64,000 nt of DNA, from the IMG/VR virus record IMGVR_UViG_3300027770_000026, positions 186,001 through 250,000 of that record; one strand, 5' to 3'. A program made the position numbers and the translations under genes. Positions 31,646 through 57,787 of the stretch are shown here, one piece after another. The number at the start of each line of letters is the position of its first letter. The stretch's first letter is position 1. The notes below the pieces were generated by a model. The model was not told the origin of the DNA. It saw only the letters and a list, made by a program, of their open reading frames with translations, and made no database searches.

Positions 31646-32056
31646 ATGTCGCTAACAAATAAAACACAAGGTAATATTACGCAGATTGCATTAGGCACGG
31701 GTACTAATGCTGGTAATGCAAATGGTACAATCAATCTAGTTGGCGGAGAGGTCATTGTAACCGGCGATTTAACAGTATTAGGCACATTAAATGCTACTGT
31801 TGATCCGTTACCTAACTTTGATAGTCCTATACTTTACATAAATGACGTAGATACACCAACAGATACCATTGGTGGATTGGTATTAAGAGGCGATACAGAT
31901 AAAGAATTACTTTGGTACGACACTACCGATGCATGGTCTAGTAATGTTAACTTTGACTTAACAACTAACGGCAGCACTTATCAAATTGAAGGTGTAACTG
32001 TGCTAAGTGCTACCGCATTGGGACAGGGAGTTGCAGTGGACGGCGGAACGTATTAA
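31646..32056 (+). CDS. Small virion structural / decoration-like protein
   Basis: VIVTGDLTVLGT...GGLVLRGDTDKELLW...DAWSSNVNFDL..G..YQIEGVTVLSATALG; ends DGGTY. Confidence 0.5.
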   Translation: MSLTNKTQGNITQIALGTGTNAGNANGTINLVGGEVIVTGDLTVLGTLNATVDPLPNFDSPILYINDVDTPTDTIGGLVLRGDTDKELLWYDTTDAWSSNVNFDLTTNGSTYQIEGVTVLSATALGQGVAVDGGTY

Positions 32057-32730
32057 AATCTTACAAAGTGATAGTCGCCGTCAACACCTAGACCACCGGA
32101 CGAGAACATACCCGATACGTCAGTAAATCCAATAGTTTTTAAATATTCCCGTACTTCGTTTACACTAGGTGCACCAATATTAAAATCTACATGTTGTAAT
32201 TCTAAAACTAGATGTTTGCAGTGTTCTAACATCTTAGTTGCACCTTTGATAATATCTAGTTCTGCACCTTGCACATCCATCTTAATAAGATCAGGCAAGG
32301 GATATCCTTTGTTAGCAACTATAGTATCTAGAGTCATTGCTATCTTTGCAACAGCAGTGCTATCGGGGAATACACAGTTGCCAAATGTATGTGCTACATT
32401 TTCTTGATAGTATGAATTGCCACCTGGCTGTTCTACATTTTCGTAGAACTTAACTTCCTTGTTGTCTTGATCGGATAACACACCAATGTTATATTTGTAT
32501 CCACTTTCTTGATATAAAAATTCTGCAGCTTCCATACCGTCAAACAAGATATATTCTGCATTAGGCCAGACAGGCTTCATTGAGTTAGTCCAATGCATAA
32601 CACACGCACCAATGTCGTATATTACTTTTGGTTCAAAATTTAGATCATCACGTAACTTTTTCAAGTAATCAACATGTGATTTTGGAAAAAGTTCTAATCG
32701 TTGTCCCAATTGTCTTAGATGATCTTTCAA
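32053..32730 (-). CDS. FkbM-family SAM-dependent methyltransferase
   Basis: VIYDIGAC...FDG...TLDTIV...PDLIKMDVQGAELDIIKGA. Confidence 0.85.
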   Translation of the reverse strand: MKDHLRQLGQRLELFPKSHVDYLKKLRDDLNFEPKVIYDIGACVMHWTNSMKPVWPNAEYILFDGMEAAEFLYQESGYKYNIGVLSDQDNKEVKFYENVEQPGGNSYYQENVAHTFGNCVFPDSTAVAKIAMTLDTIVANKGYPLPDLIKMDVQGAELDIIKGATKMLEHCKHLVLELQHVDFNIGAPSVNEVREYLKTIGFTDVSGMFSSGGLGVDGDYHFVRF

Positions 32731-35642
32731 GTCATACTCTTTTTTTTAGTATCCACAGGAGCGTAACCGGTCATTAGCCCAACCTTAAACGTAAATGCTC
32801 CTAGATGGTCGCACTTAATACTAGTGTCTACGTATATCCTGAATCCCTTGTTACGTGCTTTAGCACAGAAGTCGGTATCTTCGCTTATTGTATCCTTGTG
32901 ATCTAGTGCAACATGATATTCAAATTGCGGATATCCTACAGCACTAAATATCTCTCCCTTTGCCAACACACAACCAAATCCACATCCACCAATTTCAACA
33001 AGCGCATTATCGGGTAAATTTTGTAGTTCTGCACGATTCATACCGCCCCATTGATTAGGTAGGTAGATTTCCAATGCATGTGTGCCCGGAATACGCTGTA
33101 TATACAACCCGCTTACTATATCCACATTGTGGGATAGCATTTTCTTTAGTGTGTCGGGCGGGAATACGATATCGCTATCAACTGAGAACAGATAGTCGTA
33201 GTTTGCGGCCCAACTTGCGATTAGATTTCTTACCTGATCCACACGGTATCCAAACGTATATCTAAATTCTGTTTCATATCCATCTGGTATTTCAAGATCG
33301 TAAATGCTCTTGAACGTATCTACTTCAATATTACGTGCTGTTGGAATAGCAATCAGAATCTTCTTCTTTTTTGAAGTAGGTAATACAGTATTGCTAGCCG
33401 TTGGCATAGTTATAGTAGTAGTAGGAACTACTGGAGGCGTAATAGCAAGAGAAGGTGTTGCGGTTGGGTTAGTGAGCGATACACCTAGTTCTCTGAGAAT
33501 TTCTAATGCTGGTTTCCTCGCCTCAGTTCGTGGCGGCGGGTTTGCCGGCGGCAATTCTGGTATCGTAAACATTGGTCCGTCTTTCATTTTAATAATGTTC
33601 CTTGCATTTCTTGTTTGCTCGTCGCCGTTGATCTTGTAGTCGTTAAGTGGACTAGCATCATTATAATTATAAACAACTCTAGACACAACCGTAATTTTGT
33701 CTGGATCGGCTTGTTCTAGTACAGAGTAGAAAATAGAGCCGTCACCGCCAGCCTTAAACCAATTACCATCTGCATCTTTAAACATCTTGTCGTCCACAGC
33801 ATTGAGTAGACGCTTTCTGAAAGTACGTAAATGGGTGTAGGGCATGATCCAATTGAAATGATGATTGCGATAGTTTTTGGTATCACGCACATGTTTTGGA
33901 TATGGTTGCGATATCAACGGAATGTTATCAACTATACTCCAGCACGACCCATAACTAAATTCTGTGCCTTCGTGATAGATATTATTATAGTAGTGGAATA
34001 TGTCGGGATCGTTAACTAACCAGTCGTCGCCATCTAGGATCATAACTATATCGTCATCTCCAAGATGTTCTCTAATAGCTGATACCTGATTGCATACAGC
34101 ACCAACATTTGTTTCACTTTCTATTAGAGTAAACCTACCGTCTAATTCGTCTGGTAAGTCCTTCATTACATCCATGATAACATCGACACTATTGTCGGTT
34201 GATGCATCATTGATCAAGTACAGATGATAGTTATCGTAGTTCTGCTGGGCAACACTTTCAATACACTTGCGCAGATAATTTGCTGCATTATAAAATGTGC
34301 TAATAACTGCAATGCGTTGTTGTACGCCACGTGTTGGAGTGCCCCACTCTTCGTTGTTACTAAATCTACGTCCAAACACTTGATGTACTTTAGCATTAAT
34401 ATCTGCAGCTCTGCGGTAGTCTGTTACTGGTAAGAATTGATTTAGCTTCTTATAAAAATGCTGCTTCCACTGTACTGCAACAGTATCCCATGTACAGATA
34501 TCGCGTATCTGATTACATGCATACATCTTTTGCTGATGTAGGTATGTGTTGCGGTATGCATTTATAGTCATTTCCGCAAACTTCTGAGACTGTGTTTCCG
34601 GATTGATCTCGGGGAATAGTCCGTTTGGCTCTACGGCATAGTCTAGCTGATAGCAAGCTAGGTTAACAGCAGTTTCTTCCAGTGCACCAAAACGACTGCA
34701 AAGTACTGGAGTATTGTAGTATAAGGATTCTAAAGTGGAAATGCCAAACGTTTCGGGAAACGCACCAGGCATGATCATAAAGCTTGCACGACTGAGCAAC
34801 TCTGCAATTTCGCTTTGCTTGATAATACCAGTAAACTCTACCGCTAACTGCGCATACAATGGATTAGCTGCATACTCGCGTAGCTTCTTTTCCTGTGCAT
34901 CGGGTTCTGCATTATCTCTGAAACGATAGTATCCCCCTACTACTTTGAGCTGTGCATCGGGAATGTTAGCTTTAACTTGTGGCCAAATACGATCTAGTAA
35001 TGGGACAAGTCCCTTGGTTACGCTAGCATTGTACACAAAAAGATTGCGGTCTTTGGCAGCAACATCTACTTGATCAATATATTTTGTCATACCATTACGT
35101 GTAACAAATACCTTGTTCTTGAGTACTTCAAAGTTACGACGCTTACCGCCGTGGTGGCAGTTAGTGACATACGCTGTGTGGAAGTCGCTCAGAGTAAAGA
35201 TCTCATCGATTTGCCTATTCAACAGCAGATCTTCTAGTATCTCGTCCCCGCCGCAGAACGTGTCGTGCATCCACAACACTTTATGTTTGGCATTTTTAAC
35301 CAGCTGCTGATATCTTTTGCAATGATATCCAAACTGCGCCCAGTGTGCCCAATGATGTTCTAATGAGAAAGGAACAACAGTACGCGACCCAATCACAATG
35401 TCCGCAGTATAATCATTTGGTACATCAAGTCGAGTATGATCTACATATGTCACACCGTCAAACACACCTTCCTGCGCATGAGAATCTATGCAGTTGTTGA
35501 ATACCGTGACTTTAAATCCTAGCTTTGCAAGCTCTTTGGATATCAAAATTACAGCACTTTCACTACCGCCTAACCCGCGTTTGCTTAACGTATTACCATC
35601 ATAGGTAAGTCCAAGCACGTCAATTATTGCTACAGATAACAT
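32727..35642 (-). CDS. Multi-domain glycosyltransferase (GT-B/GT4-like + GT2 + second GT2-like)
   Basis: GLGGSESAV...ETFGISTLESL (GT4); ISTFYNAANYLRKCIESV...INDASTD...LDGDD (GT2); ILIAIPT...VDSDIVFP...GFGCVL (GT2-like). Confidence 0.85.
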   Translation of the reverse strand: MLSVAIIDVLGLTYDGNTLSKRGLGGSESAVILISKELAKLGFKVTVFNNCIDSHAQEGVFDGVTYVDHTRLDVPNDYTADIVIGSRTVVPFSLEHHWAHWAQFGYHCKRYQQLVKNAKHKVLWMHDTFCGGDEILEDLLLNRQIDEIFTLSDFHTAYVTNCHHGGKRRNFEVLKNKVFVTRNGMTKYIDQVDVAAKDRNLFVYNASVTKGLVPLLDRIWPQVKANIPDAQLKVVGGYYRFRDNAEPDAQEKKLREYAANPLYAQLAVEFTGIIKQSEIAELLSRASFMIMPGAFPETFGISTLESLYYNTPVLCSRFGALEETAVNLACYQLDYAVEPNGLFPEINPETQSQKFAEMTINAYRNTYLHQQKMYACNQIRDICTWDTVAVQWKQHFYKKLNQFLPVTDYRRAADINAKVHQVFGRRFSNNEEWGTPTRGVQQRIAVISTFYNAANYLRKCIESVAQQNYDNYHLYLINDASTDNSVDVIMDVMKDLPDELDGRFTLIESETNVGAVCNQVSAIREHLGDDDIVMILDGDDWLVNDPDIFHYYNNIYHEGTEFSYGSCWSIVDNIPLISQPYPKHVRDTKNYRNHHFNWIMPYTHLRTFRKRLLNAVDDKMFKDADGNWFKAGGDGSIFYSVLEQADPDKITVVSRVVYNYNDASPLNDYKINGDEQTRNARNIIKMKDGPMFTIPELPPANPPPRTEARKPALEILRELGVSLTNPTATPSLAITPPVVPTTTITMPTASNTVLPTSKKKKILIAIPTARNIEVDTFKSIYDLEIPDGYETEFRYTFGYRVDQVRNLIASWAANYDYLFSVDSDIVFPPDTLKKMLSHNVDIVSGLYIQRIPGTHALEIYLPNQWGGMNRAELQNLPDNALVEIGGCGFGCVLAKGEIFSAVGYPQFEYHVALDHKDTISEDTDFCAKARNKGFRIYVDTSIKCDHLGAFTFKVGLMTGYAPVDTKKKSMT

Positions 35643-35727: not shown

Positions 35728-38700
35728 ATGGCTACTTTTAACTTAATTCAGATGAAGCGCAGTGCAACTCCGGGAAAAGTCCCCACAACACAGGACTTAT
35801 CGCTGGGAGAATTTGGTATAAACACTTACGATGGTAAGGTTTTTATCAAAAAGGACGACGGTACGCCTAGTATCGTTGAAGTTGGCGTCAGAGGCGCCAC
35901 TGCAGTTCAAAATGTATTTTATGTAAGTAAAAGTGGTAATGATGCAAACGACGGAAAGAGCCTAGATAAGTCCAAACTTACAATTAAGTCTGCTGTAGCA
36001 GCAACTCGCGCATTAGTTGCAACTGCAACTGCGACCGTAGCCAATGGGTCAATTACTGCATTATATGTAACAAATCCAGGCGCCGGGTATGAATTACCCT
36101 TAATCCCAACCGTCACAATCTTTGGCGACGGTACCGGAGCAAGAGCAGTACCTATTATCAGTAGCGGATCAGTTATAGGTTTTACAATACTAGATAGAGG
36201 TATTGACTACACTTACGCCGATGTATACATAACACCGGCTGGCGCAGGACGCACTGGTGCAGGCTCAACCATATTTGTCAAGAGCGGCGACTATACAGAA
36301 GATAATCCAATTTACATCCCAGCCGGAGTAAGCATTGTTGGCGACAGTTTGCGTTCGGTGACAATTCGTCCGCAAAACACAACGCTGGACTTGTTTTGGG
36401 TTAATAACAAGAGCTACTTTACTGAAATGACTTTCAGAGATCATAAGGCTCCGGCTGCAATTATCGCATTCCCCTCAGTTGACATTACTGGCATTGAAAA
36501 TACCAATCCTGCCCGTGTAACGTTCTCGGGAGTATTCATATATGACAGAGTTAAATGTTCACGTGACGTTGGACTTATTGTAGATGCTCTTGCACAAGAC
36601 ATTAAATTTCCTGGTCTAGATGGCACAAGCCAAAGCATGTTTGCTGGCTTGCAGTACTGGACACAAAGTGGATACAGTATTCCAAATGTGTACCCAACAT
36701 CAGAAGTAACAGCAACACTGGGCGCACTTGCTCAACTTAAACTAGAAATTGCTGCGTTGCTTGGACCGGTGATGACTATAACTACGGACTCACTAGTTGA
36801 CGTAATTATTAACATATTAAATGGTACAACAAATCCTGCTACAGTCACGGATCTGATAGTACCAAACGGTACAACAGCAATTACAGCAACGGACGTTGTT
36901 AACGCATACGCTGACATACAAGCAGCAAAGACTACAATTATAGATAATATTATTAACTGGATTAACACTGTTGGTGCTCCGGGCATAACTTACGACGAAG
37001 CCCTTTGTCGCAGAGACCTTGGTTATATCATTGACAGTGTGTGCTACGACTTGTTGTACGGCGGCAACCGTCAAGTAATTCAAAATGGTATCTACTACTT
37101 GGGGTTCTCGGAAACGGACACAGCAATTCCAGGTGAGATTCCTCAGGTAACTGCTGCATATAACTATCTAAAGAGTATTGTTCCTTTGGTCATTGAAGGA
37201 ACAGCAATTGCATCACCTCGTCAGACTAAGGTTGTACAAGTTACAACAGGTAGTAATGGCACCGTAACACAGTCTAATCTAGCAACTAGCAATATTGACA
37301 TGATATTAGATATTATTAATACCGGACCAGCTGCATACGTAACTGCTGGAACACGTACACCAATTGGTCTAGTTGCAGCAAGCGGCAATGCTACCAATGC
37401 ATATAACAAGTTAATAGCTAATAGAGATTTCCTACGTGCAGAAGTAATTGCTTACATTGATCAGGAGACAATTTCGTTTGATCGTGCCAAGTGCTATCGT
37501 GACCTTGGACTCATTGTGGATTCTATTGCAACTGACGTGACATTCACCGATAGAACACAAACAACTTTTGCAGGTATCCAGTATTGGAGTCAGGCTGCAC
37601 TAGCATCGTCTAGCGAAATAAATCCGGGTGAGATTGCAGCTACAATTAACGCATATACATATCTTAAAGCAATTGCACTAGATATTATTCAAGACATATC
37701 AACACATGTTCTATATACACCGGTGTCGTATCCTCGAGTGACAGCAGCATCTATACCTACATCTGCAGTAACCGACCCTACAGTTATTTCTGCTATTAGT
37801 GACAATTTTGATCTGTTACTTGATATATTGACCGATGGCAATACCAATAACGTAACAGAGCGTATTATTTCAAGTGGTTTGATTATTGCAGGCAATACAA
37901 CGCAGCAATATCATGCGGCATTACTCTTAAATGCTAACACAGATTTCTTTAAGGAACAAGTAACATTAAGAATTGCTAACCAATTCCCGTTGTTAGTATA
38001 CAATACCGCTACTTGCGAGCGAGACGTACAATATGTTACTAGTTGCATAAGCAGAGACAATCTATTTGGTGGCAATCGCCAGACTGTGCAAGCAGCAGTA
38101 TACTATTATAGCTATCTAGCAGCTAGTACAGTACCAACAGAAATACAGCAAATTGAAAAAGCTTACAAGTATATCAAGATATTAGCTAGCTACATTATAC
38201 GTGGGCTACCAATGCCTTATGTATATCAAACTGGAGAATTACAAGACTTTGTAACTGCTTCCGGTGTTGGTACATTGACGCAAGTCACAGTGGCACAGAA
38301 CCTAGTAGATTATATGTTGGGCATCATCAATGATAAAACAACAGCAGATGCACCTGGATACGCCGGCATCTCAGAATTTAGTACAACGTATCGTCGTGCG
38401 GGCGAGCAATTACTAGCCAACAAAGAATTCATTAAGGCAGAAGTTGTTGCGTACCTAGAAGGATACACGTATAACCGTACAACATGTTCACGTGACACCG
38501 GACTCATTGTGGATGCGCTGGTACAAGACTTATTGTTTGATGGCGATAGCCAATCAACATTTGCAGCAATCCAGTACTGGAGTCAGACAGCAGAACGTTC
38601 AATCCCAGCAGGAGAGATTGCAGCAACAGTAGCGGCAATTGACTTTGTTATCACTCAGACTAATGCATTGTCTATTAGAACAGCAGACAAGACTAATATT

Positions 38701-41700
38701 GAAAATGGTTTTGACTTAATAAGAAATCTATTGGATGAAACTGTTAACGTAGCAACAATCACCAGCGGCATAGTTCCTAACAGTATTGAACCTGATCGCG
38801 ATGCGCAAGCTGCGTATGATGCGCTACAAGCAGCCAAAGCAACAATCATTGACGATACGATTGCAGACATTGCAGGTACGTTCCCGTCATTTGATCAACC
38901 AATTACGGGCGCAACTGCAGCAAGTCCTGTTGTACTAACTATTACAGGTCACGCCTTTGCAGATGGTGACTCCATTAGAATCAACAACATTGAAGGCATG
39001 GTTGAGCTAAACGGCAATCGTTACTACACTAAGAACACTGGCGCAAATACCGTAGAGCTATACTTAGATGCTACATTGCTAACTGCTCTAGACGGTACAG
39101 GATTTACAGCGTACGAGACAGGCGGTTATGCAGATACACAGACTGCAGCGAAATGCCGCAGAGATTTGGGCTACATGATTGACAGTGTTAGCTTTGATTT
39201 GTTGTATAACGCTGACCCAACTAACACTGTTCAGTCTAACAGACAAGCAGTACAATCAGGCGTTTACTATTGGAATCACTCAACTACTGTAAGCATAGTA
39301 CCTGGCGAAAAACCAATTGTAACAGCAGCATACGATTACATCAAGACATTGTCGTCGTACATTGTTGAAGGACGCGAGGTTCCAACAGTATACGGTACAG
39401 TGCCACAAGTGATGCCAGAGGGGCCAATGGCAATTGGTACAACACAAGACGTTAACAAGATTACTGACAAGCTTGACCTGATGATTAACATTATCAATGC
39501 AGGCCCAAGTGTTGCACCAAATCCAGAACCAATTAGCCTAGCACGTATCGGTTCATTTAATTACAACCGCACCAAGTGCTCACGTGACTTAGGACTGATC
39601 GTAGACGCCATTGCACAGGACATTAAATTCCCAGGCACCAGCGGCGACAGTCAAACAGTGTTTGCTGGCCTGCAATACTGGACACAGAACGACGGGTATA
39701 GTATCTCAAACATTGCACCAAGTGCAGAAGTTGCAGCAACAGTTGGTGCACTAGTGCAGTTGAAAGCGCAAATCACTGCAGTTGCTGCAGCTACATCTGC
39801 TACAACAGATGAACTAATTGATCTTATCATAAACATTATCAATAGAATTATCGATCCAGCTGATGTTACCGATTTGATTATACCAAACGATGCGATCGCT
39901 AACACCGGAGCAATAGCTACAGCCTACGCAGCAATACAATCGGCCAAGACAACAATTCGCGCCAACATAGTTACTTGGGTTAACACTAACTATCCAGCAT
40001 TAGTATATAACTCTACAACTTGTAGTCGAGACGTTGGTTTTATAATTGACAGCGTATGCTATGACTTGTTGTATAACGGCAACCGTCAGGCAATTCAAAG
40101 CGGTATCTACTATCTAGGCTTCTCGTCAACTGATAGTGCAGTGGCAGGTGAAATACCACAGGTAACTGCCGCTTACACCTATCTAAAGAGCATACTGCCT
40201 TCTATCATTGAAGGGACACCATTGGCTACAACATATCAAACAGACGTAGCACAAGTTACATCGGGTAGCAGCGGTACACCAACACAGTCTACACTTGCAG
40301 CCGACGCAGTAGATATCATACTAGACATTATTAATAATGGTCCTGGTACATACCTTGACGCTGGCACACGTACTCCAATTGGTCTAGTTGCCGCTGGCGG
40401 TAATGCTAATAACACTTATACACGGTTGCAAGCTAATAGAGACTTTATCCGTGCAGAAGTAATTGCTTACATTGATACTACAGTTGTAACGTACGATCAT
40501 CTCAAGTGCTCACGCGACCTTGGGTTGATCGTTGACGCACTAGCACAAGACTTGAAGTTCCCAGGACTAGACGGCAACAGCCAAAGCATGTTTGCTGGCT
40601 TGCAGTACTGGACTCAAGCAGATGGTTATAGTGTTCCTGATGGATCTCCTAGCGAGAAGGCCGCTACACTTGATGCACTAGCATATCTCAAGTCGCAGGT
40701 TGCAGGATTGGCTGGTGTAACAATTGATTCAACTACAAATGCACTATTTGACACTATCATCGATATACTAGATGGTACAACACCTCCGGCTAGCGTAACT
40801 GATCTGATTGTACCAAACGGAACAACAGCAAGTGTTGTTACTGCAGTAACTGATGCATATGCTGCAATTCAAACAGCAAAAGCAACACTACCTGCTGCTA
40901 CAGTTGCATACATACAAGGACTACCTGCGTACTCGGGTCTAGTATTTGATACAGGATTGTGCGAGCGCGACGTTGGTTACATATTAGACAGTATTTCATA
41001 TGACGTACTGTATGGCGGTAATCGTCAGGCAATACAAAGCGGTATCTACTATCTAAACTTCTCAAGTACAGTGACTGCAATTCCAAACGAAGTACCGCAG
41101 GTAACTGCTGCGTATGAATACTTGAAGTCAATTATCCCATCTATTGTTACAGGTACACCGGTTGCAACACTATATCAAACAGAAGTTGCACAGGTAATCT
41201 CAGGTAGCAGTGGTGCAGGTGCAGCAGCATCCGTACAGGCAAATGTTGATTTGATATTGGATATCATTATCAACGGACCAAACGCTTATATTACTCCAGG
41301 TACAAGAACACCAATTGGACTAGTAGCAGAAACAAACGCAACTATACTGAATGCCTATAACAAGTTGGTAGCAAATCGTAGTTTCTTACGTGCAGAAATC
41401 ATTGCGTATATTGACTATGTACTACAGCAGAAGTATCAAACAACAGCTAACGCTGCATATCTACTAAACGCTAACCGTGCGTTCATTGTATCAGAGCTAA
41501 TTGGATTTACGGACGAAAACTACGCAATACAGCACCCATACTCGAGCGGAGATACTATTTCTATTCGTCAGGTTGTTGGTATGACAGAAGTCAATAACGG
41601 TTATATACATCAGATCACCAATGCAACCAACACCAACCCAGTTAGACTAACATTTAATAAGGGTCATGCCTTTGGAGATACTACTTCGATGAGACTATCT

Positions 41701-43545
41701 GCTGTAGGCGGAATGAACGAAGTTAATGGCAATCGTTACTATGCACGTTTCTTTAATACTACAGAAGTTGAACTGTTCAATGACGTTAAACTAACAGATC
41801 CTGTTGATGGAACACTGTTTGGTTCATACACCAGCGGCGGCCAGGCAGAAACAGACAGCTTCTATTATGTACGAAAGATAGATGGCGACAGCATTGATCT
41901 GTATCTTGATCGTGCGCTAACACAACCAGTTGATGCAACTAACTGGGGTTCGTATATTACCGGTGGTATTGCTGGAACTGGCGCATTACCAGTAAGCCCA
42001 TACGTACACAACTGCTCCAGTATCACTACAACTGGCACAGGTATGCGTGTTGACGGTAACTTGAGTACTGGATTGAAGTCTATGGTCCTCGACTCGTTTA
42101 CCCAAATTAACGAAGGTGGTAACGGGATTGAAATCATCAACCGCGGTTACGCACAGCTCGTATCCATTTACACCATTTGTACTGACATTGGTATTTTGTG
42201 TAAGGGCGGCGGCTTCTGTTCCGTTGCTAACAGTGACAGCAGCTTTGGTACATACGCACTAGTTGCGGATGGATTAAGTGAAGTATTGTATTCGGGTGTA
42301 ACAGACGGCGACTTGCAAACAGGCAAGGCTATCAACCTTAAGGGGCTAACGCACCGTCCAAACTATGGCGATGCGATGGACGTCACTAGTGAATTAATTG
42401 TCGCAGACGCATATATCGTAGCAGCTAGTGCAACTATTAACGATCCTGGCACAGGTTATAAGCCGGGCGATTTGATGGAACTCGACGGCATAGTAGGCAC
42501 TTCGCCAAAGTTCCGCGTATCAACAGTTAAGATTGTTAGCGCATCCGTTAATACCTTAGTATCGGGGTCACTTGCAATAGGTGATAGATTTACGTTCTCT
42601 AAGGGATATAGTACATCTGCTGTGCTTGAAGTAGCAACAGTTACGCCATCGGTTACATTTACTATTATCGAAGCTGGCGTTAAGAACACGGGAGTAACAG
42701 CTCTAACAAATATTAGTCCCGATATCTCGTCATCGGCTGCTGTAATAACAGTGGATCTGGTGTACGGAATTGAATCGGTCGGAGTTGCAGCACCATTTTA
42801 TGGCGAACTAATAGAAACTCCATCAAACCCATCTGTTACTATAACATCTACTGGTATTGGCGTAGATGCACTGCTAGACGTAATTTATTCGGTACGCTTG
42901 ACTTTTGACGATCCGCACTACTTTAGGGGCGACGAGCAGATTGTAGCTAGTGGGTTTACGGGTAGTAATAATCAATCGTTGCTAAACGGTAATACGTATT
43001 TTATCAAATTAACTAACAATGCGTACAAAGCAGATCTACACATAGACTCTGCTCTAGCACTGGGAGTTGATACATCACTGTATACTGCATCATATGATGG
43101 TGGTGGCACCGCTACACTACACGACTACTATACCGTAGTAACAGCAACAGAAGGACCAGTTGCAACTGCAGGCACATACGAAGGATTACGTCAAAGTCAG
43201 ATTGGACTAGAAATTGCTGTTAAGCGTCCAATTGTAGATGAATCTGCAGTTGAGTTCCGCCAACGTAGTATTGTATCGTCCTCGGGCCATACATTTGAGT
43301 ACATTGGTTCGGGAAATATACTAAGTACAGCAACACCAGAAGCGGGTGCTTATCCAATTGCAGCCAACGAAGTAGTTGAGCTGCGTGGAGGTAAAGCATA
43401 CTTTACTGGAACTAACGAACAAGGCGACTTTAAAATCGGTACTGAACTGGTAATTAATCGCGATACTGGTACAATCTCTGGTAGAACATTTAACAAGAGC
43501 TTGTTCGCAGTACTAACGCCATACATATTGGCACTCGAGGGATAA
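35728..43545 (+). CDS. Giant virion fibre protein: Mtd-N-like anchor, split beta-helix, ten tandem phycobiliprotein-like CxRD repeats, small beta-barrel repeats
   Basis: N-term IQMKRSATPGKVP..L.LGE.GINTYDG; FYVSKSGNDANDG and IFVKSGDYTE..PI.IPAGVSIVGDSLR beta-helix; CxRD repeats at Cys277-Cys1745; C-term SSSGHTFEYIGSG...FTGTNEQGDFKIG. Confidence 0.75.
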   Translation: MATFNLIQMKRSATPGKVPTTQDLSLGEFGINTYDGKVFIKKDDGTPSIVEVGVRGATAVQNVFYVSKSGNDANDGKSLDKSKLTIKSAVAATRALVATATATVANGSITALYVTNPGAGYELPLIPTVTIFGDGTGARAVPIISSGSVIGFTILDRGIDYTYADVYITPAGAGRTGAGSTIFVKSGDYTEDNPIYIPAGVSIVGDSLRSVTIRPQNTTLDLFWVNNKSYFTEMTFRDHKAPAAIIAFPSVDITGIENTNPARVTFSGVFIYDRVKCSRDVGLIVDALAQDIKFPGLDGTSQSMFAGLQYWTQSGYSIPNVYPTSEVTATLGALAQLKLEIAALLGPVMTITTDSLVDVIINILNGTTNPATVTDLIVPNGTTAITATDVVNAYADIQAAKTTIIDNIINWINTVGAPGITYDEALCRRDLGYIIDSVCYDLLYGGNRQVIQNGIYYLGFSETDTAIPGEIPQVTAAYNYLKSIVPLVIEGTAIASPRQTKVVQVTTGSNGTVTQSNLATSNIDMILDIINTGPAAYVTAGTRTPIGLVAASGNATNAYNKLIANRDFLRAEVIAYIDQETISFDRAKCYRDLGLIVDSIATDVTFTDRTQTTFAGIQYWSQAALASSSEINPGEIAATINAYTYLKAIALDIIQDISTHVLYTPVSYPRVTAASIPTSAVTDPTVISAISDNFDLLLDILTDGNTNNVTERIISSGLIIAGNTTQQYHAALLLNANTDFFKEQVTLRIANQFPLLVYNTATCERDVQYVTSCISRDNLFGGNRQTVQAAVYYYSYLAASTVPTEIQQIEKAYKYIKILASYIIRGLPMPYVYQTGELQDFVTASGVGTLTQVTVAQNLVDYMLGIINDKTTADAPGYAGISEFSTTYRRAGEQLLANKEFIKAEVVAYLEGYTYNRTTCSRDTGLIVDALVQDLLFDGDSQSTFAAIQYWSQTAERSIPAGEIAATVAAIDFVITQTNALSIRTADKTNIENGFDLIRNLLDETVNVATITSGIVPNSIEPDRDAQAAYDALQAAKATIIDDTIADIAGTFPSFDQPITGATAASPVVLTITGHAFADGDSIRINNIEGMVELNGNRYYTKNTGANTVELYLDATLLTALDGTGFTAYETGGYADTQTAAKCRRDLGYMIDSVSFDLLYNADPTNTVQSNRQAVQSGVYYWNHSTTVSIVPGEKPIVTAAYDYIKTLSSYIVEGREVPTVYGTVPQVMPEGPMAIGTTQDVNKITDKLDLMINIINAGPSVAPNPEPISLARIGSFNYNRTKCSRDLGLIVDAIAQDIKFPGTSGDSQTVFAGLQYWTQNDGYSISNIAPSAEVAATVGALVQLKAQITAVAAATSATTDELIDLIINIINRIIDPADVTDLIIPNDAIANTGAIATAYAAIQSAKTTIRANIVTWVNTNYPALVYNSTTCSRDVGFIIDSVCYDLLYNGNRQAIQSGIYYLGFSSTDSAVAGEIPQVTAAYTYLKSILPSIIEGTPLATTYQTDVAQVTSGSSGTPTQSTLAADAVDIILDIINNGPGTYLDAGTRTPIGLVAAGGNANNTYTRLQANRDFIRAEVIAYIDTTVVTYDHLKCSRDLGLIVDALAQDLKFPGLDGNSQSMFAGLQYWTQADGYSVPDGSPSEKAATLDALAYLKSQVAGLAGVTIDSTTNALFDTIIDILDGTTPPASVTDLIVPNGTTASVVTAVTDAYAAIQTAKATLPAATVAYIQGLPAYSGLVFDTGLCERDVGYILDSISYDVLYGGNRQAIQSGIYYLNFSSTVTAIPNEVPQVTAAYEYLKSIIPSIVTGTPVATLYQTEVAQVISGSSGAGAAASVQANVDLILDIIINGPNAYITPGTRTPIGLVAETNATILNAYNKLVANRSFLRAEIIAYIDYVLQQKYQTTANAAYLLNANRAFIVSELIGFTDENYAIQHPYSSGDTISIRQVVGMTEVNNGYIHQITNATNTNPVRLTFNKGHAFGDTTSMRLSAVGGMNEVNGNRYYARFFNTTEVELFNDVKLTDPVDGTLFGSYTSGGQAETDSFYYVRKIDGDSIDLYLDRALTQPVDATNWGSYITGGIAGTGALPVSPYVHNCSSITTTGTGMRVDGNLSTGLKSMVLDSFTQINEGGNGIEIINRGYAQLVSIYTICTDIGILCKGGGFCSVANSDSSFGTYALVADGLSEVLYSGVTDGDLQTGKAINLKGLTHRPNYGDAMDVTSELIVADAYIVAASATINDPGTGYKPGDLMELDGIVGTSPKFRVSTVKIVSASVNTLVSGSLAIGDRFTFSKGYSTSAVLEVATVTPSVTFTIIEAGVKNTGVTALTNISPDISSSAAVITVDLVYGIESVGVAAPFYGELIETPSNPSVTITSTGIGVDALLDVIYSVRLTFDDPHYFRGDEQIVASGFTGSNNQSLLNGNTYFIKLTNNAYKADLHIDSALALGVDTSLYTASYDGGGTATLHDYYTVVTATEGPVATAGTYEGLRQSQIGLEIAVKRPIVDESAVEFRQRSIVSSSGHTFEYIGSGNILSTATPEAGAYPIAANEVVELRGGKAYFTGTNEQGDFKIGTELVINRDTGTISGRTFNKSLFAVLTPYILALEG
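36541..41520 (+). repeat. Ten ~150-170 aa protein repeats, alternating A/B types
   Basis: Cys codons at 36556, 37006, 37492, 38014, 38485, 39154, 39577, 40021, 40507, 40960. Confidence 0.9.
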
Positions 43546-43548: not shown

Positions 43549-43896
43549 ATGGCTTCCACTATACCTTTAAATACGTTTAAAACTGTTGCTTCTGCAATAA
43601 CTACGGCAGACGTAGACATCTATACTGCACCTGTAGGCATTACTACTATTATATTGATGGCGCAAGTCTCTAATATGAACGTAGGAACCCCGCTTGATAA
43701 ATGGGTAAGTGCTGCTCACAATGATGGCTCCACAATGAGATATTTGGTACGCGAATTTGGAGTCCCACCAAACGACAGTGTAAGTGTATTAACTGGTAAA
43801 TTAGTATTGGAATCAGGACAAAGTATCACTATGTCGGCAGAGGATAACGACTATCTAGAAGTTGTGTTAAGCATACTAGAAACATCAAACGAATAA
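43549..43896 (+). CDS. Small virion protein associated with giant fibre
   Basis: IPLNTFKTV...IYTAPVGITTIILMAQVSN...GKLVLESG...S.LET, typical partner of such fibres. Confidence 0.6.
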   Translation: MASTIPLNTFKTVASAITTADVDIYTAPVGITTIILMAQVSNMNVGTPLDKWVSAAHNDGSTMRYLVREFGVPPNDSVSVLTGKLVLESGQSITMSAEDNDYLEVVLSILETSNE

Positions 43897-43897: not shown

Positions 43898-46039
43898 ATG
43901 GCCAAATTACTTACAACACTTAGCGGTAGAGTTAAAAAGGTAGCTGCAACGACTGCTGGCTATCCTCTAGCAGCGGACCCAACATGGATCAGTCTAAGAG
44001 AAGCTGAACCAAATTTAGGCGTACCTCCGGGCGTAAGTTATGTTTTGTCCAGTGATATAACTGGAACAAGATTTTGGACTCCAGCGATAGGCGATGTTGG
44101 CCCACAGGGCCCACAAGGCTTTACTGGATCAATAGGGTTTACCGGATCACGTGGACCACAAGGTCCACAAGGATTCACTGGTAGTAAAGGTCCACAAGGA
44201 TTCACTGGTAGTATTGGACCACAGGGTGTAGGATTCACTGGATCTCGCTCTACTGTAGAAGGATTTACTGGATCAATAGGATACACCGGATCTCGCTCTA
44301 CGGTAGAAGGATACACTGGATCAATAGGATTTGTTGGATCACGTGGTCCACAAGGCTTCACTGGTTCAGTTGGATTTGTTGGTAGTACTGGATCAGGTTT
44401 CACTGGATCAATTGGCCCACAAGGCTTTACTGGTTCGATTGGTGCAGGCTTTACTGGCTCGCAGTCAACTACACTTGGTTACACTGGCTCAACAGGCCCA
44501 CAAGGCCCAGTTGGTTTTGTTGGAAGCTTGGGAACTGGTTTTACTGGATCTAGAGGCGCAGGCGCGCAAGGCCCGCAAGGTCCGTTGGGTTTTACTGGAT
44601 CAATTGGTCCAACAGGACCACAAGGTTTTGCTGGATCGGTGGGCGGCACAGGTGGTTCAGGATACACGGGCAGTGCAAGTACAGTATCAGGTCCACAAGG
44701 CTACACTGGTAGTATTGGATATACCGGCAGCATCGGTGTACAAGGTCCACAAGGCTACACCGGTTCACGCGGCGCAGGGGCGCAGGGCCCGCAAGGATTC
44801 AATGGCTCACAAGGTTTTGTTGGCAGTGTTGGTCCACAAGGACCACAAGGACCACAAGGTCCACAAGGACCAATTGGCTATACAGGATCGCGTGGTTTTG
44901 TTGGTTCAGTTGGTGCACAAGGTCCGCAAGGATACACTGGCAGCATTGGCTTTACCGGCTCAGTTGGGGCACAAGGACCACAGGGCTATGTTGGCTCAGC
45001 TGGTAATACAGGCTCACAAGGTGTTGATGGTGCACAAGGTCCACAAGGCTATACAGGTAGCACGGGCGCACAAGGTCCACAAGGATATGTTGGCAGCATT
45101 GGCGCACAAGGTCCACAAGGTCCACAGGGCTACACCGGCTCTAGGGGCGCAACTGGCGCACAAGGTCCACAAGGTCCAACTGGCTTTACCGGATCAGCGA
45201 GCATTGGATTCAGTGGAAGTGGTGTAGTTGGAGCACAAGGTCCACAGGGCTACACTGGTAGCCTTGGCTATGCTGGTAGTGTTGGATCAACAAATCCAAA
45301 TGCTGATTTATTAGATGGGTATGACAGCTCAGAATTTGCTTTACTTGCAAGAGTAGAAAACAAATTCTCAGGCGACCTAAGAGTGTACATTGGTACAAAC
45401 GTTAATAATGGTAGAATATATTTTACCGAGACCCAGCAAACATATCTAGCATATAATAGTTCAGACTGGGTAGTTAAGAGAAATGGCGGTTTACTCGACG
45501 ATACTGTATGGGATTCTGGTAACGATGGTGCGGGTTCGGGCCTAAACGCAGACTTATTAGATAGTTACCAAGGCTCACATGTTCTGTCTCACGTAAATGC
45601 AACTAATACAACAATTACAGGTAGTACATATTATCCTGTAGTAGTAAGCACTAGTGGATCAAATACATTTGCTCGTGTAGACACTACAAACTTTAGCATT
45701 CAAAGTGGTACACTATATGCTACAGACTTTGCTTCTACATCGGATGCAAGACTTAAGGATGTAGTTGGATACCTAGGTAGTTCACTAGATCGTGTTAAGA
45801 GTATTAGTGGTGTAAACTACTACTGGAACGAAGCAGCTAAGAATCAAGGTATACTTGACAAGAAGTTGCAAGTTGGTGTTTTAGCACAAGAAGTGCAAAA
45901 GATACTACCAGAAGCGGTACACGAGCACGATGGTAGACTACATGTAGTGTACGATAAGTTGATTGCACTGTTAATTGAAGCTATAAAGGAACTTGACGCT
46001 AAGATAGAAAACAAAGGCTGCAACTGTAGCTGCAAATAA
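43898..46039 (+). CDS. Collagen-like tail fibre with C-terminal intramolecular chaperone (peptidase S74-like)
   Basis: ~400 aa Gly-X-Y (GPQ/GFT/GSx); NADLLDG motifs; [24 protein letters not shown]...[15 protein letters not shown]. Confidence 0.85.
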
Positions 46040-47796: not shown

Positions 47797-48003
47797 TTAG
47801 GCTCCCTTAGTTTCTTCGGTTGGAGCAGGTTTAGGTTCTTTTGAATCTAAGAATGCTTCTACCTTTGCGTAAATCTCGCCAACGGCAACAAATTCCTTAG
47901 TTTGGAATGCTCCCCTTTTAGAGGCAACGTCAACGATAGCAAGAAGATTCCTGATATCGGCGATACTTAGTGTTGGCTCTGGTGCTGTTGCATTTTCTGT
48001 CAT
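47797..48003 (-). CDS. Small conserved phage protein
   Basis: LSIADIRNLLAIVDVASKRGAF...E...VG..Y.K...FL; AGGAG SD. Confidence 0.65.
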   Translation of the reverse strand: MTENATAPEPTLSIADIRNLLAIVDVASKRGAFQTKEFVAVGEIYAKVEAFLDSKEPKPAPTEETKGA

Positions 48004-48058
48004 AATAAACTCCTTAAAGTTGCATGCTGAATATTTAAGCATGCAACAGTGGCCAGTC

Positions 48059-48083
48059 AAAAAAAAGCCCCGTTGCCGGGGCT
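48059..48083 (-). terminator. Rho-independent terminator after ligase
   Basis: AGCCCCG-GCAA-CGGGGCT followed by U-tract on minus strand. Confidence 0.8.
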
Positions 48084-48094
48084 AAGGTAAATCG

Positions 48095-49405
48095 TTAAAT
48101 CTTTTCGCCTCGTAGGTTACGGAAGCGCACAAAGCGAGGGAAGCGTAGACTGTAACTGCCGTCCTGATTCTGTGTTACGGCATCGGCCATCACTTCAACC
48201 AGTTCGCCAGTAACGGAACTAGCATTAAGCCAAAAATCGTCACGCTGTTCATCGCTAAAGCCACTGCCTACGTTAACCTGGATAGTGCGTCCGTTATCCA
48301 CGCCTTCACATACCAAAGCACCCAAACGTCCTTCATTCTTACCCGTTCCTTCTTCTAATCCCGTAACTGCAAGATCCACAGTAATTACAGGTTTGACCTT
48401 TAGCCATGCATGCGATCGCTTAAGTTCATAGAGCGCGCCGGGGTCCTTGACCATAATGCCTTCATAACCACCTGTAATGGCACTTGCGTTGATCTCACGG
48501 AAACGCTGCTGCCCTGCATTGCTACTGAGATCAACCAACTCCTGTTCCACTACCCGCACGTTTGGCAGTGCAGATGATACTAAACTGTACCAAGTCATCA
48601 ACTGTTCGCTGCGATTGCTCTGTACTTGAATACCAGCATCCTCAACGAACTCGTTCAATGGAATGATGTCAAACAAGTATAGCACTGCATCGCTAGCAGC
48701 AACATCAGTCTTACGATGTATCTGCTTCATGAGGTCTTGGAAGCTATTGCTCATTACCTCACCATCTAGTACCATTGGCTCTGTAAACTGCCCTGCAACC
48801 TTAGCAAGCTGACGCTTGATCCGTTCGAAGTTTACCAGTTCCTTGCCGCTGCGGCTGTACTGATCTACTCGACCATTGGGGTACACAATAGTGAGAACAC
48901 GCACCCCATCCAACTTGACTTCGATAAACTTTTCGCCTGTCATCCGCTTGGGATGGTCAGTCCCATCGTGCGCCAACTGGCAAGTGAATACCGGTACCCG
49001 AAGATCCCCCCTGCCGGCATCTGCCAGCACGTCGTTGATAGTCTTTTCAGACGTACCACAACGCAAATCTTTAATAAGGATACGACGGTACCAATGGTTC
49101 CATTCGTTGTTAGTAGCACAGTCCATTGCTGCCTTGATAGCATCACGAGCAGCATGACCAGTCAGTTCGCGCTGACTAAGTTGGAAAGCGAGGTCACGGA
49201 ATTCTTCCCAAGCAAGCCCCCGACCATTAACACCGCTACGCTCTGGCACTTGCTTAACACCAAAGGTAGTCAGTGCATCGTAGGTCAAACGCACGCCGTG
49301 GAAAAACTCTTCGCAACCTTCTGTCAGTGCGCGAGAGACAATAGCAATTTTGTCCTTGCGTCCTGACGTAGCCTGCAGATCCAATACAACCTGTTCTGGT
49401 TTCAT
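48095..49405 (-). CDS. lig: ATP-dependent DNA ligase
   Basis: EVKLDGVR (motif I), LDGEV, EGIMVKD, WLKVKP, SLRFPRFVRFR. Confidence 0.93.
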   Translation of the reverse strand: MKPEQVVLDLQATSGRKDKIAIVSRALTEGCEEFFHGVRLTYDALTTFGVKQVPERSGVNGRGLAWEEFRDLAFQLSQRELTGHAARDAIKAAMDCATNNEWNHWYRRILIKDLRCGTSEKTINDVLADAGRGDLRVPVFTCQLAHDGTDHPKRMTGEKFIEVKLDGVRVLTIVYPNGRVDQYSRSGKELVNFERIKRQLAKVAGQFTEPMVLDGEVMSNSFQDLMKQIHRKTDVAASDAVLYLFDIIPLNEFVEDAGIQVQSNRSEQLMTWYSLVSSALPNVRVVEQELVDLSSNAGQQRFREINASAITGGYEGIMVKDPGALYELKRSHAWLKVKPVITVDLAVTGLEEGTGKNEGRLGALVCEGVDNGRTIQVNVGSGFSDEQRDDFWLNASSVTGELVEVMADAVTQNQDGSYSLRFPRFVRFRNLRGEKI

Positions 49406-49797: not shown

Positions 49798-49806
49798 AGG
49801 AACTCC

Positions 49807-51039: not shown

Positions 51040-51064
51040 TGCAATCTCCTTACCTTATGTTCGT

Positions 51065-51093: not shown

Positions 51094-51111
51094 CAACTAA
51101 ATTCTCAATAG

Positions 51112-57232: not shown

Positions 57233-57787
57233 ATGAGCCTAAAAGAACTTACCAAAGACAAACATACTGCTGCGGAACATACGCCATTTATGCAGTCAGT
57301 GTTCAAACGCACAATGCCCGTTGAAATTTGGGCAGACTATACCCTAAACAAGATGCATTGGTACAATGCTATCGAAATGCGAGCAAGAGCTGCAGGTCTA
57401 TTGGAAGACCTTCCGGGGCTCGAACGTACATATCTACTGTATCAGGATTACAGAGCTATGTGTAAAGTTCCCAATCACTTCTACACTGTTAGCACCATGC
57501 GCTACTACACATACATTATGGATTTAGTTGATGTTGATGCCATCATGGCCCACTTGTATGTATGGCACATGGGCGACTTATATGGCGGGCAGATGATTAA
57601 GCAGATTATGGATCATGTGTCGCATCGTAATTTAGATTTTGATAATCCTGACTTGCTCAAAGCAAACATCCGAGTTAAGTTGCATGATGGCATGGCCAAT
57701 GAAGCTAACTGCGCATTTGATTGGGCAATACGTATTATGAACGAGTACAATGAGGCATTGACTAGTGGACATATGGCAAAAGGCTGA
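57233..57787 (+). CDS. hemO: Heme oxygenase
   Basis: LKELTKDKHTAAE proximal His helix; AHLYVWHMGDLYGGQMIK distal helix; EAN.AFDWAI. Confidence 0.92.
   Translation: MSLKELTKDKHTAAEHTPFMQSVFKRTMPVEIWADYTLNKMHWYNAIEMRARAAGLLEDLPGLERTYLLYQDYRAMCKVPNHFYTVSTMRYYTYIMDLVDVDAIMAHLYVWHMGDLYGGQMIKQIMDHVSHRNLDFDNPDLLKANIRVKLHDGMANEANCAFDWAIRIMNEYNEALTSGHMAKG

Follow-up and report, generated by a model that had tools for sequence, protein, structure and literature searches.

The analyzed window, a stretch of 64,000 nucleotides (positions 186,001 to 250,000 of IMG/VR virus record IMGVR_UViG_3300027770_000026), derives from a large freshwater phage and encodes a giant fibre protein of 2605 aa within one intact, uninterrupted ORF, as well as a two-gene cassette for bilin synthesis located ~14 kb from the fibre gene. 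The features of this region are as follows.

35728..43545 (+), giant fibre gene, 2605 aa, matching PHROG tail-fibre families phrog_17885 (E 3e-87) and phrog_5342 (E 2e-81)
35728..36420 (+), N-terminal region (aa 1-231), shared with annotated tail-fibre proteins of cyanomyoviruses; presumed attachment part
36421..36870 (+), repeat 1 (A type, no upstream helix), Cys277
36871..37356 (+), repeat 2 (B type), Cys427; modelled
37357..37878 (+), repeat 3 (A type), Cys589
37879..38349 (+), repeat 4 (B type), Cys763
38350..38772 (+), repeat 5 (A type), Cys920
38785..39525 (+), repeat 6 (B type), Cys1143, split by an inserted E1_FCCH-like beta-barrel (aa 1056-1142, nt 38893-39153)
39442..39885 (+), repeat 7 (A type, no upstream helix), Cys1284; the start is approximate and overlaps the tail of repeat 6
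39886..40371 (+), repeat 8 (B type), Cys1432
40372..40824 (+), repeat 9 (A type), Cys1594; modelled
40825..41352 (+), repeat 10 (B type), Cys1745
41326..41541 (+), two orphan copies of the first helix only (aa 1867-1899 and 1901-1938; family HMM positions 4-36 and 5-41, i-E 6.5e-6 and 1.5e-3)
41530..41979 (+), FCCH-like beta-barrels, one nested inside another (aa 1935-2084)
41980..43545 (+), C-terminal fibre part, shared with many cyanomyovirus tail-fibre proteins; presumed distal, receptor-side part
43549-43896, 115-aa ORF preceding the next fibre gene
43898..46039 (+), next fibre gene (collagen-like tail fibre, 713 aa; phrog_5073, E 8e-68)
57233..57787 (+), heme oxygenase (HO), first gene of the bilin cassette
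[quoted passage not shown]

The ten tandem repeats proposed by an earlier sequence-only reading are indeed present as described. The motif C-x-R-D occurs exactly ten times in the ORF, with Cys at aa 277, 427, 589, 763, 920, 1143, 1284, 1432, 1594 and 1745 (spacings of 150, 162, 174, 157, 223, 141, 148, 162 and 151 aa), and the example peptides given in that reading were all found. All ten segments align with each other, with C, R, D, a second D, Q, Y, E and A being invariant, and a family HMM detects the ten domains with i-E-values of 1e-20 to 3e-53 and only in this ORF of the window, so that chance is excluded. The repeats alternate between an A type (KCSRDLGLIVDALAQD..FAGLQYW) and a B type (CRRDLGYIIDSVCYDLLYGGNRQ). 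The 223-aa spacing is caused by the beta-barrel (PF16190, E 1.5e-15) inserted between the first helix and the Cys helix of repeat 6, where HMM positions 4-40 lie before the insert and positions 41-159 after it. In repeats 1 and 7 the HMM match starts only at position 37, and the upstream helix is missing; the description of most (but not all) repeats as preceded by a helix is therefore accurate.

The resemblance of these repeats to phycobiliproteins (PBPs) is supported by four independent lines of evidence, including the Pfam and fold searches that had been set beforehand as checks of the idea. First, 27 of 127 repeats of the family match Pfam PF00502 at E<=0.1 (best 2.3e-5), while every other Pfam family is hit by at most one repeat. 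At the level of single window repeats this signal is weak: repeat 2 matches at E 0.028 (repeat aa 18-110 on profile positions 48-138) and repeat 10 at E 0.066, the best window repeat scores 14.9 bits and thus remains below the Pfam gathering score of 22.2, the whole protein gives no PF00502 hit, and precomputed hits on relatives are marked as faint. Second, the top three PDB hits of a family profile are phycocyanin alpha chains (E 0.0068-0.037), with the repeat Cys placed on Cys84 and the GG at +18 in register. Third, hhalign against 122 real PBP sequences yielded Prob 80.5% and E 1.3e-5 over 123 columns, and against alpha subunits alone Prob 93.5% and E 2.4e-7, as compared with Prob <=1.8% for reversed and 20 column-shuffled controls. 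Fourth, confident AF2 models of repeat 2 (B type, pLDDT 86.5, pTM 0.76) and repeat 9 (A type, pLDDT 84.6, pTM 0.80) returned almost only PBPs from the PDB in Foldseek searches: the top 22 hits for the B-type model are all PBPs, and the top 50 for the A-type model are all PBPs or the ApcE bilin domain (best TM 0.64/0.60 at rmsd 3.5 A, rmsd 3.4-3.7 A overall, probability ~1.0), although the respective E-values are only 0.05-1.

The putative bilin site is strongly conserved. In 753 unique repeats from other viral contigs, Cys is kept in 96%, Arg in 98% and Asp in 99%, along with Asp(+14) in 99.8%, Tyr(+30) in 99.8% and Asn(-26) in 95%. This is a set of polar residues, and Cys, Asp, Ile and Asp at i, i+3, i+7 and i+14 fall on one face of the helix. 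CXRD is the bilin site of PBPs as well as of BBAG-1 and BBAG-3 (bilin biosynthesis-associated globins, BBAGs), which attach bilins without lyases (Rockwell, Martin and Lagarias 2023, PMC10151467).

A virion-fibre assignment is supported by homology and by genomic context. The N-terminal part matches phrog_17885 (aa 7-257), with tblastn pieces starting at aa 1-7 in tail-fibre proteins of P-SSM2, S-SKS1 and B3/B23, whereas the C-terminal part matches phrog_5342, phrog_9851, phrog_529 and phrog_3442 and, by tblastn (aa 2083-2605), proteins of ACG-2014f, S-SCSM1, P-SSM2 and others; sequence searches with either part revealed no relative in the PDB. The gene is located in a T4-like structural module together with portal, prohead protease, gp23 capsid and baseplate genes, between the capsid gene and the collagen-like fibre gene, and the same order is observed in relatives. 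The capsid protein is closest to those of jumbo phages of Proteobacteria (62-67%), placing the phage among jumbo myoviruses of these hosts, and a host phycobilisome is therefore not an obvious use for the bilin.

Both genes of the bilin cassette, which the sequence-only reading did not cite, score above the Pfam cut-offs (HO: PF01126, E 1.5e-12, 48.2 bits vs. 23; FDBR: PF05996, E 6.9e-17, 62.3 bits vs. 31) and overlap by 23 nt. The HO is 30% identical to that of Pelagibacter phage Mosig, and the best isolate hit of the FDBR is the PcyX-like gene of the same phage (38.5%, or 40% in a MAFFT alignment), while cyanophage PcyA reaches ~27%. Such cassettes are already known from phages (Ledermann et al. 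2016 as cited in PMC11480375; Mosig; Crystal-Bog phage CB_2) as an overlapping HO-FDBR gene pair in a myovirus of a probably non-cyanobacterial host, and the FDBR is adjacent in 68 of 80 related HO loci. For those phages no bilin acceptor is known (“still enigmatic”, PMC11480375), whereas here a candidate acceptor is encoded in the same genome. Fibre and cassette also share one contig in two further phages (the ENA 299,002-bp contig and IMG/VR 3300032240_001991, 326,658 bp), whose bilin enzymes are only ~50-57% identical to those of the window.

Nevertheless, the coupling of the domain to bilin genes is not universal. None of 80 FDBR loci has a repeat within 10 kb, and Mosig, despite its HO and PcyX-like FDBR, has no such domain anywhere in its genome. 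Of 18 fibre-bearing contigs of at least 150 kb, only one matches a contig among the close FDBR relatives, and a 358-kb relative with 15 CxRD domains shows none, although both results come from comparisons of limited sensitivity and are lower bounds. No dedicated lyase gene (CpcE/F, CpcS/U or CpcT/CpeT type) was found among 46 window ORFs scanned against Pfam, no CpeT-like ORF was found in the six-frame translation of the window, and no lyase gene was found near 77 fibre loci.

A different situation is observed in marine cyanomyoviruses, where members of the same domain family occur in giant “short tail fibre / tail protein” products of the tail module (T4-GC 734: S-PM2p218, Syn1_032, SRSM4_214 and the S-H9-1 tail fibre-like protein), each with 3-7 CxRD repeats that are fewer than in the window protein and scattered among other domains; some repeats in cyanophage proteins lack the Cys. 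These proteins are encoded next to (directly upstream of) gp12 in S-PM2, Syn1, S-RSM4 and S-H9-1, and the bilin-lyase homologue cpeT lies 0.6-4 kb upstream on the same strand in about 20 distinct cyanomyoviruses, although this adjacency could merely reflect the strong overall synteny of cyanomyovirus genomes (PMC3037559). In these phages the host supplies bilins and lyases. We found no paper noting the phycobiliprotein likeness of these proteins, nor any published description of the fibre reported here.

Comparison with established systems revealed both shared and distinct features. With PBP alpha subunits (phycocyanin, allophycocyanin, phycoerythrin; PF00502) the repeats share the predicted globin-type helical fold, K-C-x-R-D-x-G on the helix equivalent to E with a G-G 18 residues later, a conserved Asn in the preceding helix and an A-x-x-Y-x-K helix at +48. 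However, each repeat corresponds to PBP residues ~38-162 (helices B to H) and lacks the X, Y and A helices that PBP subunits use to pair, so that the match in length to a whole subunit of 160-175 aa, invoked in the sequence-only reading, is partly coincidental, and the pocket may differ. Likewise, the A and B types are not alpha-like and beta-like, as both resemble alpha subunits more. The domains are tandem in one chain instead of ~160-aa subunits forming (alpha-beta)3 discs, they have extra invariant Asp (+14) and Tyr (+30) and, in B-type repeats, a 20-30 residue non-helical linker, they have no lyase at hand, and they are encoded by a phage that is probably not a cyanophage. With BBAG-1 and BBAG-3, the fibre shares a non-photosynthetic context and the CXRD motif, HO and FDBR are encoded in the same genome but not next to the fibre gene, and lyase-independent attachment is the mechanism proposed here; BBAGs are single-domain cellular proteins encoded next to the enzymes, and the ten domains of the fibre lie ~14 kb from the cassette. 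The bilin-binding domain of the core-membrane linker ApcE (TM 0.58/0.60 for 4xxi_B, and also a hit within 7vea_aM) is, similarly, a PBP-type domain embedded in a very large multidomain polypeptide, and ApcE attaches its bilin autocatalytically; yet ApcE has one PBP domain followed by linker repeats of another fold, and it is cyanobacterial and part of the antenna.

Taken together, these data are best explained, with somewhat better than even confidence, by a giant virion fibre of a jumbo T4-type myovirus, whose shaft holds ten tandem, truncated globin domains homologous to PBPs and, by inference, to BBAGs, each keeping the C-x-R-D bilin site on the helix equivalent to helix E. In this view, late in infection the phage HO would open host heme to biliverdin, the adjacent FDBR would reduce it to a phycobilin (phycocyanobilin or phycoerythrobilin), the new fibre domains would bind that bilin in the cytoplasm and link it to the conserved Cys, most likely by self-attachment as in BBAG-1 and BBAG-3 because no lyase gene was found in the window, and fibres with up to ten bilins per chain would be mounted on the particle. 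Our analysis establishes the repeat architecture, the homology and predicted fold, the conservation of the site, the fibre context and the presence of bilin-synthesis genes in the same genome, whereas bilin binding, its covalent (and lyase-independent) linkage and the presence of the protein on the virion are inferred, there being no direct evidence for a chromophore. Thus, the earlier interpretation of the protein as a poly-phycobiliprotein displayed on a pigmented virion is partly supported: the PBP-like and fibre-type character of the protein holds, whereas bilin attachment, the pigmentation and the suggested roles (light sensing, photoprotection/antioxidant shielding or host recognition) are not shown.

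The main alternative, which we consider possible but less likely, is a pigment-free structural module, with a PBP- or BBAG-derived helical domain recruited as a rigid spacer for long fibres, the C-x-R-D residues kept for folding or inter-domain contacts, and the HO-FDBR cassette serving another purpose, such as iron release or host physiology. In line with this view, the domain is far more widespread (1261 clusters at 50% identity, with up to 35 repeats per protein) than close relatives of this FDBR (only 137 found), and the cassette without the domain in Mosig, the lack of a detected lyase or tight linkage and the Cys-less cyanophage repeats point in the same direction. On the other hand, a single unpaired Cys kept, together with Arg and Asp, at the above frequencies in divergent repeats is hard to explain by packing alone, the same three residues are the ligand site in the homologous families (PMC10151467), and polar residues are not what usually stays invariant in a helical spacer. 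It is rather unlikely that the domains bind a different ligand in the old bilin cleft (biliverdin from host heme oxygenases, heme, another tetrapyrrole, a metal at the Cys, or a host surface molecule). Many carriers seem to lack an FDBR, BBAG-2 proteins bind biliverdin (PMC10151467), and the invariant Asp at +14 and Tyr at +30 have no obvious conserved PBP counterpart; but the exact CXRD signature is that of the phycobilin-binding branch and not of the BBAG-2 branch, and an FDBR co-occurs in at least three divergent carriers. A protein acting inside the infected cell, for example as a bilin sink or scaffold, appears very unlikely: although “tail fibre” labels are annotation by similarity, it is opposed by the homology of both termini to tail-fibre proteins and by the gene order described above, including the position of the cyanomyovirus homologue directly upstream of gp12. 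Finally, convergence or a motif coincidence can be all but dismissed, since, despite weak single-repeat scores and an antibody chain carrying CRRD that scored as well as phycocyanin against a ten-sequence profile, the signal grows with profile depth, extends over 123 columns and beats the controls, is limited to one Pfam family and is matched by fold searches for two separately modelled repeat types.

The purpose of such a pigment remains a guess, our preferred one being a light-responsive or light-protective fibre that gates or preserves adsorption, with a merely structural cofactor as the fallback. Overall, a phage that encodes its own bilin-synthesis enzymes along with a giant tail-fibre-type protein carrying ten tandem domains with the predicted fold and the Cys-x-Arg-Asp pigment-attachment motif of cyanobacterial phycobiliproteins may have pigmented virions, which would explain why phages of non-photosynthetic hosts make bilins.

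The flagged stretch lies inside one intact ORF on the + strand, and the sequence-only observation of ten repeats holds in full, as C-x-R-D occurs ten times, with Cys at exactly the residues that had been listed (aa 277, 427, 589, 763, 920, 1143, 1284, 1432, 1594 and 1745) and with spacings of 141-174 aa plus one of 223 aa. The ten segments align along their whole length and alternate between an A type and a B type, whereas repeats 1 and 7 lack the first helix. A profile HMM built from the family detects the ten domains at i-E 1e-20 to 3e-53 and nowhere else in the six-frame translation of the window. The long spacing comes from an E1_FCCH-like beta-barrel inserted between the first helix and the Cys helix of repeat 6, and repeat 10 is followed by two orphan copies of that helix, a nested pair of the same barrels and a C-terminal fibre part. 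The features of this ORF are as follows.

35728-43545 (+), giant fibre gene, 2605 aa
aa 1056-1142 of the fibre, E1_FCCH-like barrel inserted inside globin repeat 6
41530-41979 (+), aa 1935-2084 of the fibre, one E1_FCCH-like barrel that appears split by a complete second copy inserted into it (domain-in-domain)
aa 2417-2462 of the fibre, a partial copy of the barrel

A megablast search of this gene against 50,697 phage records found nothing, and phmmer searches of the N- and C-terminal parts against the PDB found no relatives.

The phycobiliprotein (PBP) likeness of the repeats is supported by four independent lines of evidence. First, single window repeats give only sub-threshold hits to Pfam PF00502 (repeat 2, E 0.028, 14.9 bits against a cut-off of 22.2; repeat 10, E 0.066), but among 127 diverse repeats (ten from the window and 117 from other viral contigs at under 50% mutual identity) 27 hit PF00502 at E<=0.1 (best 2.3e-5), while each of the other 36 families listed was hit by a single repeat. 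Second, although a ten-sequence profile searched against the PDB was inconclusive (phycocyanin at E 0.93, tied with an antibody chain), the 127-sequence profile ranks three phycocyanin alpha chains first (E 0.0068, 0.034 and 0.037), in an alignment that puts the repeat Cys on Cys84 of K-C-x-R-D-x-G-Y-Y and keeps a G-G 18 residues on. Third, we have collected real phycobiliprotein genes from metagenome contigs by a degenerate pattern for the alpha-84 motif (60 alpha-like and 62 beta-like sequences), and hhalign of the repeat family against them gives Prob 80.5%, E 1.3e-5 over 123 columns, or Prob 93.5%, E 2.4e-7 against alpha subunits alone, whereas a reversed template and 20 column-shuffled templates reach at most Prob 1.8%. 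The aligned span covers PBP residues ~38-162, that is helices B, E, F', F, G and H, and the X, Y and A helices are absent. Fourth, the AF2 models of B-type repeat 2 (pLDDT 86.5, pTM 0.76) and A-type repeat 9 (pLDDT 84.6, pTM 0.80) are both all-helical, and a Foldseek search against 350,542 PDB chains returns phycobiliproteins as all of the top 22 hits for repeat 2 and phycobiliproteins or the ApcE bilin domain as all of the top 50 hits for repeat 9, with TM reaching 0.64/0.60 at rmsd 3.5 A over ~137 columns against allophycocyanin. The E-values of these predicted-fold matches are modest (0.05-1), and it is the exclusivity of the hits that is persuasive. Both repeat types resemble alpha subunits more than beta, and the idea that A and B repeats mirror alpha and beta subunits is therefore rejected, the A/B alternation being a duplication within the phage lineage and not an alpha/beta pair.

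The residues of the putative bilin site are conserved. In 753 unique repeats from about 74 other viral loci, the columns for Cys, Arg and Asp of C-x-R-D hold those residues in 96%, 98% and 99% of cases, and an Asp 14 residues after the Cys (99.8%), a Tyr at +30 (99.8%) and an Asn in the first helix (95%) are also nearly invariant. As read from the sequence, Cys, Asp, Ile and Asp at i, i+3, i+7 and i+14 lie on one face of the helix. According to Rockwell et al., CXRD is the chromophore site in PBPs and in BBAG-1 and BBAG-3, where the Cys makes the covalent bond and the Arg and Asp hydrogen-bond the bilin, and BBAGs attach bilins without lyases (PMC10151467).

The window is a T4-type structural and replication region, which contains a baseplate wedge and hub, a T4 baseplate protein, a tape-measure-like protein, the portal, the prohead protease, the gp23 capsid protein, a 971-aa glycosyltransferase, the fibre gene and a collagen-like fibre gene and, further on, ThyX, a DNA ligase and dTDP-rhamnose synthesis genes. 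About 14 kb downstream of the fibre gene, a two-gene island on the + strand among - strand genes encodes heme oxygenase (HO) and an overlapping ferredoxin-dependent bilin reductase (FDBR). The neighbouring features are as follows.

9308-13702 (-), 1464-aa protein with a central lysozyme/endolysin-like domain (phrog_181 E 2e-42), next to the baseplate hub gene; probably a tail-associated cell-wall hydrolase
32053-35642 (-), 971-aa multi-domain glycosyltransferase and an FkbM-type methyltransferase, transcribed divergently from the fibre gene
48000-54000, stretch in which G+C rises to 47-52% against ~42% elsewhere, holding a DNA ligase, a 410-aa HNH endonuclease (phrog_1314 E 3e-112), a QueD-like PTPS and an AAA ATPase, with a GIY-YIG-like ORF at 53974-54324 as a weak hit
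56775-57194 (-), DUF454 membrane protein (E 1.4e-27), just upstream of the HO-FDBR island
57233-57787 (+), heme oxygenase (PF01126 E 1.5e-12)
57765-58436 (+), ferredoxin-dependent bilin reductase (PF05996 E 6.9e-17)
59948-63210 (-), dTDP-rhamnose genes (RmlA-D homologues)

Given the glycosyltransferase and dTDP-rhamnose genes, the phage may glycosylate a virion protein or alter the host surface. A DUF454 gene is also near the cassette in a 127-kb ENA contig (locus L165, 1315-1773). Among isolates, the reductase is closest to the PcyX-like enzyme of Pelagibacter phage Mosig (38.5% by tblastn), while cyanophage PcyA reaches only ~27%. No lyase, stand-alone globin or phytochrome-type domain was found among 46 window ORFs scanned against Pfam, and no CpeT-like lyase was found in the window or near metagenomic fibre loci. 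The T4 late-promoter motif TATAAATA is not enriched in the window (3 sites against 3.9 expected) and is not upstream of the fibre or HO genes, so co-expression could not be argued. Nevertheless, the only three TATAAATA sites, at 6421-6428 (-), 14861-14868 (-) and 22878-22885 (+), each lie just upstream of a gene (the baseplate wedge gene, the unannotated 284-aa ORF at 14003-14857 and the tape-measure-like gene) and fit T4-type late promoters. The capsid protein is 62-67% identical to those of jumbo myoviruses of Proteobacteria (Sinorhizobium Phosso, Vibrio 2.275.O, Pseudomonas PA5oct and Cronobacter GAP32) and less to cyanophages, and the identical sequence lies on a 265,892-bp IMG/VR contig; the host is probably not a cyanobacterium.

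Beyond this phage, the repeat profile finds 1261 clusters at 50% identity among 1.84 billion proteins, nearly all of the best 150 being giant proteins with up to 35 repeats, and 978 giant relatives were found in the 90% collection, many of them already carrying a faint PF00502 tag. In one genome per species of 185,579 prokaryotes, a scan with the ten-sequence alignment yielded only three loci, all in metagenome bins (two in the Rhodobacteraceae bin FZLS01 and one in a Crocinitomicaceae MAG), and the domain is therefore essentially phage-borne; these are probably phage contigs binned with a host, which could hint at hosts of some carriers. A fold search of BFVD shows the same predicted fold in tail or structural proteins of S-H9-1, S-CAM1, S-WAM2, S-PM2, ACG-2014d and ACG-2014f. 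The HMM confirms CxRD repeats in the giant protein that precedes gp12, namely S-PM2p218 (3), Syn1_032 (4), SRSM4_214 (7) and that of S-H9-1 (3), and 459 cyanophage records hold relatives of the S-H9-1 protein. In P-HM2 (GU075905, 44500-94499), two CxRD repeats occur in the 4454-aa 'gp7' PHM2_086 and two Cys-less repeats in the 3677-aa 'YapH' PHM2_096. The GenBank record of S-PM2 (AJ630128, 163339-178455) places 16 tRNA features inside the coding sequence of p218, which looks like a coordinate error in that record.

Links of the domain to bilin genes are observed in part of the family. Besides the window's phage, an ENA contig of 299,002 bp carries both an HO-FDBR pair (HO 52.5% and FDBR 50% identical to the window's) and a fibre of 3296 aa with 18 domains, 15 of them with CxRD, its capsid being 76% identical, and IMG/VR contig 3300032240_001991 (326,658 bp) likewise carries a fibre and an HO-FDBR pair (57% and 51% identical). 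In about 20 distinct marine cyanomyoviruses, a comparison of coordinates places the bilin-lyase homologue cpeT 0.6-4 kb upstream of the giant CxRD protein that precedes gp12, on the same strand, usually with only tRNAs and a 2OG-Fe(II) oxygenase between; that oxygenase (T4-GC 104) is always directly upstream of the giant gene, and in S-H9-1 the cpeT is present but unannotated (record 32002-32511). However, cpeT adjacency may simply reflect the strong synteny of these genomes (PMC3037559).

Other observations speak against a bilin function. Tight linkage was looked for and not found, as no HO or FDBR lies within 10 kb of 77 fibre loci and no repeat lies within 10 kb of 80 FDBR loci. Most large fibre-bearing contigs, including a 358-kb relative with 15 CxRD domains, do not reappear among the close FDBR or HO relatives listed, and the fibre and FDBR lists share one contig besides the window's own phage; since at most 120 hits were compared in each list, this absence is weak evidence. 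The idea that every HO/PcyX phage has the domain is rejected, because Mosig has the cassette but no such domain. In Mosig (MT647606, 39650-44735) the HO-PcyX pair sits between the neck genes and the tail-fibre genes, beside four 2OG-Fe(II) oxygenases and a ferrochelatase, so it is within the structural module there too.

The best-supported reading is a fibre whose shaft domains are bilin-binding globins, which would be loaded in the infected cell with bilin made by the phage's own HO and FDBR and attached to the conserved Cys without a lyase, as BBAGs do. The sequence-only interpretation of a pigmented poly-phycobiliprotein on the phage particle is thus supported only in part: the repeat architecture, the PBP-like profile and predicted fold, the conserved site residues and the HO and FDBR genes in the same window were established by this analysis, whereas bilin binding, its lyase-independent attachment and display on the virion are inferred, and any purpose of a pigment is a guess. 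The main rival is a pigment-free structural module. Two unexplained facts in the literature could be addressed by a pigmented fibre: the role of HO and PcyA/PcyX in phages of non-phototrophs, which is 'still enigmatic' and for which only a phytochrome or a BBAG has been speculated as the acceptor (PMC11480375), and the adsorption of S-PM2, P-HM1 and P-HM2, which needs light, independently of host photosynthesis (PMC6628666). Both S-PM2 and P-HM2 carry CxRD domains, but the domain may be near-universal in cyanomyoviruses, so this is a lead and not a correlation.

A bolder possibility, which we consider unlikely on present evidence, is that tailed phages carry covalently pigmented fibres, chromophorylated by phage HO and FDBR in jumbo phages of heterotrophs and by CpeT plus host or phage bilin in cyanomyoviruses, which would act as a virion-borne photoreceptor that makes adsorption depend on light. 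This reading would account at once for the 'enigmatic' bilin genes in phages of non-phototrophs, for the purpose of phage CpeT and for the light-dependent adsorption of S-PM2 and P-HM2.

Full-text literature searches, in which most subscription journals were not covered, found no paper describing phycobiliprotein-like domains in phage structural proteins. We regard the domain as a new, phage-borne branch of the phycobiliprotein/BBAG globin superfamily in a new architectural context, and not as a phycobiliprotein proper, since it fails the Pfam threshold, lacks the X-Y helices and is not a free subunit.

Overall, with respect to the open question of why phages of non-photosynthetic hosts make phycobilins, this fibre provides a concrete, phage-encoded candidate acceptor, with ten conserved CXRD globin domains in the same genome as the enzymes. 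The family is large, almost confined to phage sequence, and reaches model cyanophages, so that the idea is amenable to testing in an existing laboratory system (S-PM2 on Synechococcus WH7803). If bilins are attached, these would be the first pigmented phage particles, textbook 'auxiliary metabolic genes' (ho1, pcyA, pebS, cpeT) would partly be virion-maturation genes, a physical basis for light-dependent adsorption would be at hand, and compact, possibly self-attaching bilin domains could serve as fluorescent tags. Even without pigment, this is a new, very large branch of the phycobiliprotein/BBAG superfamily, which bears on where phycobiliproteins came from.
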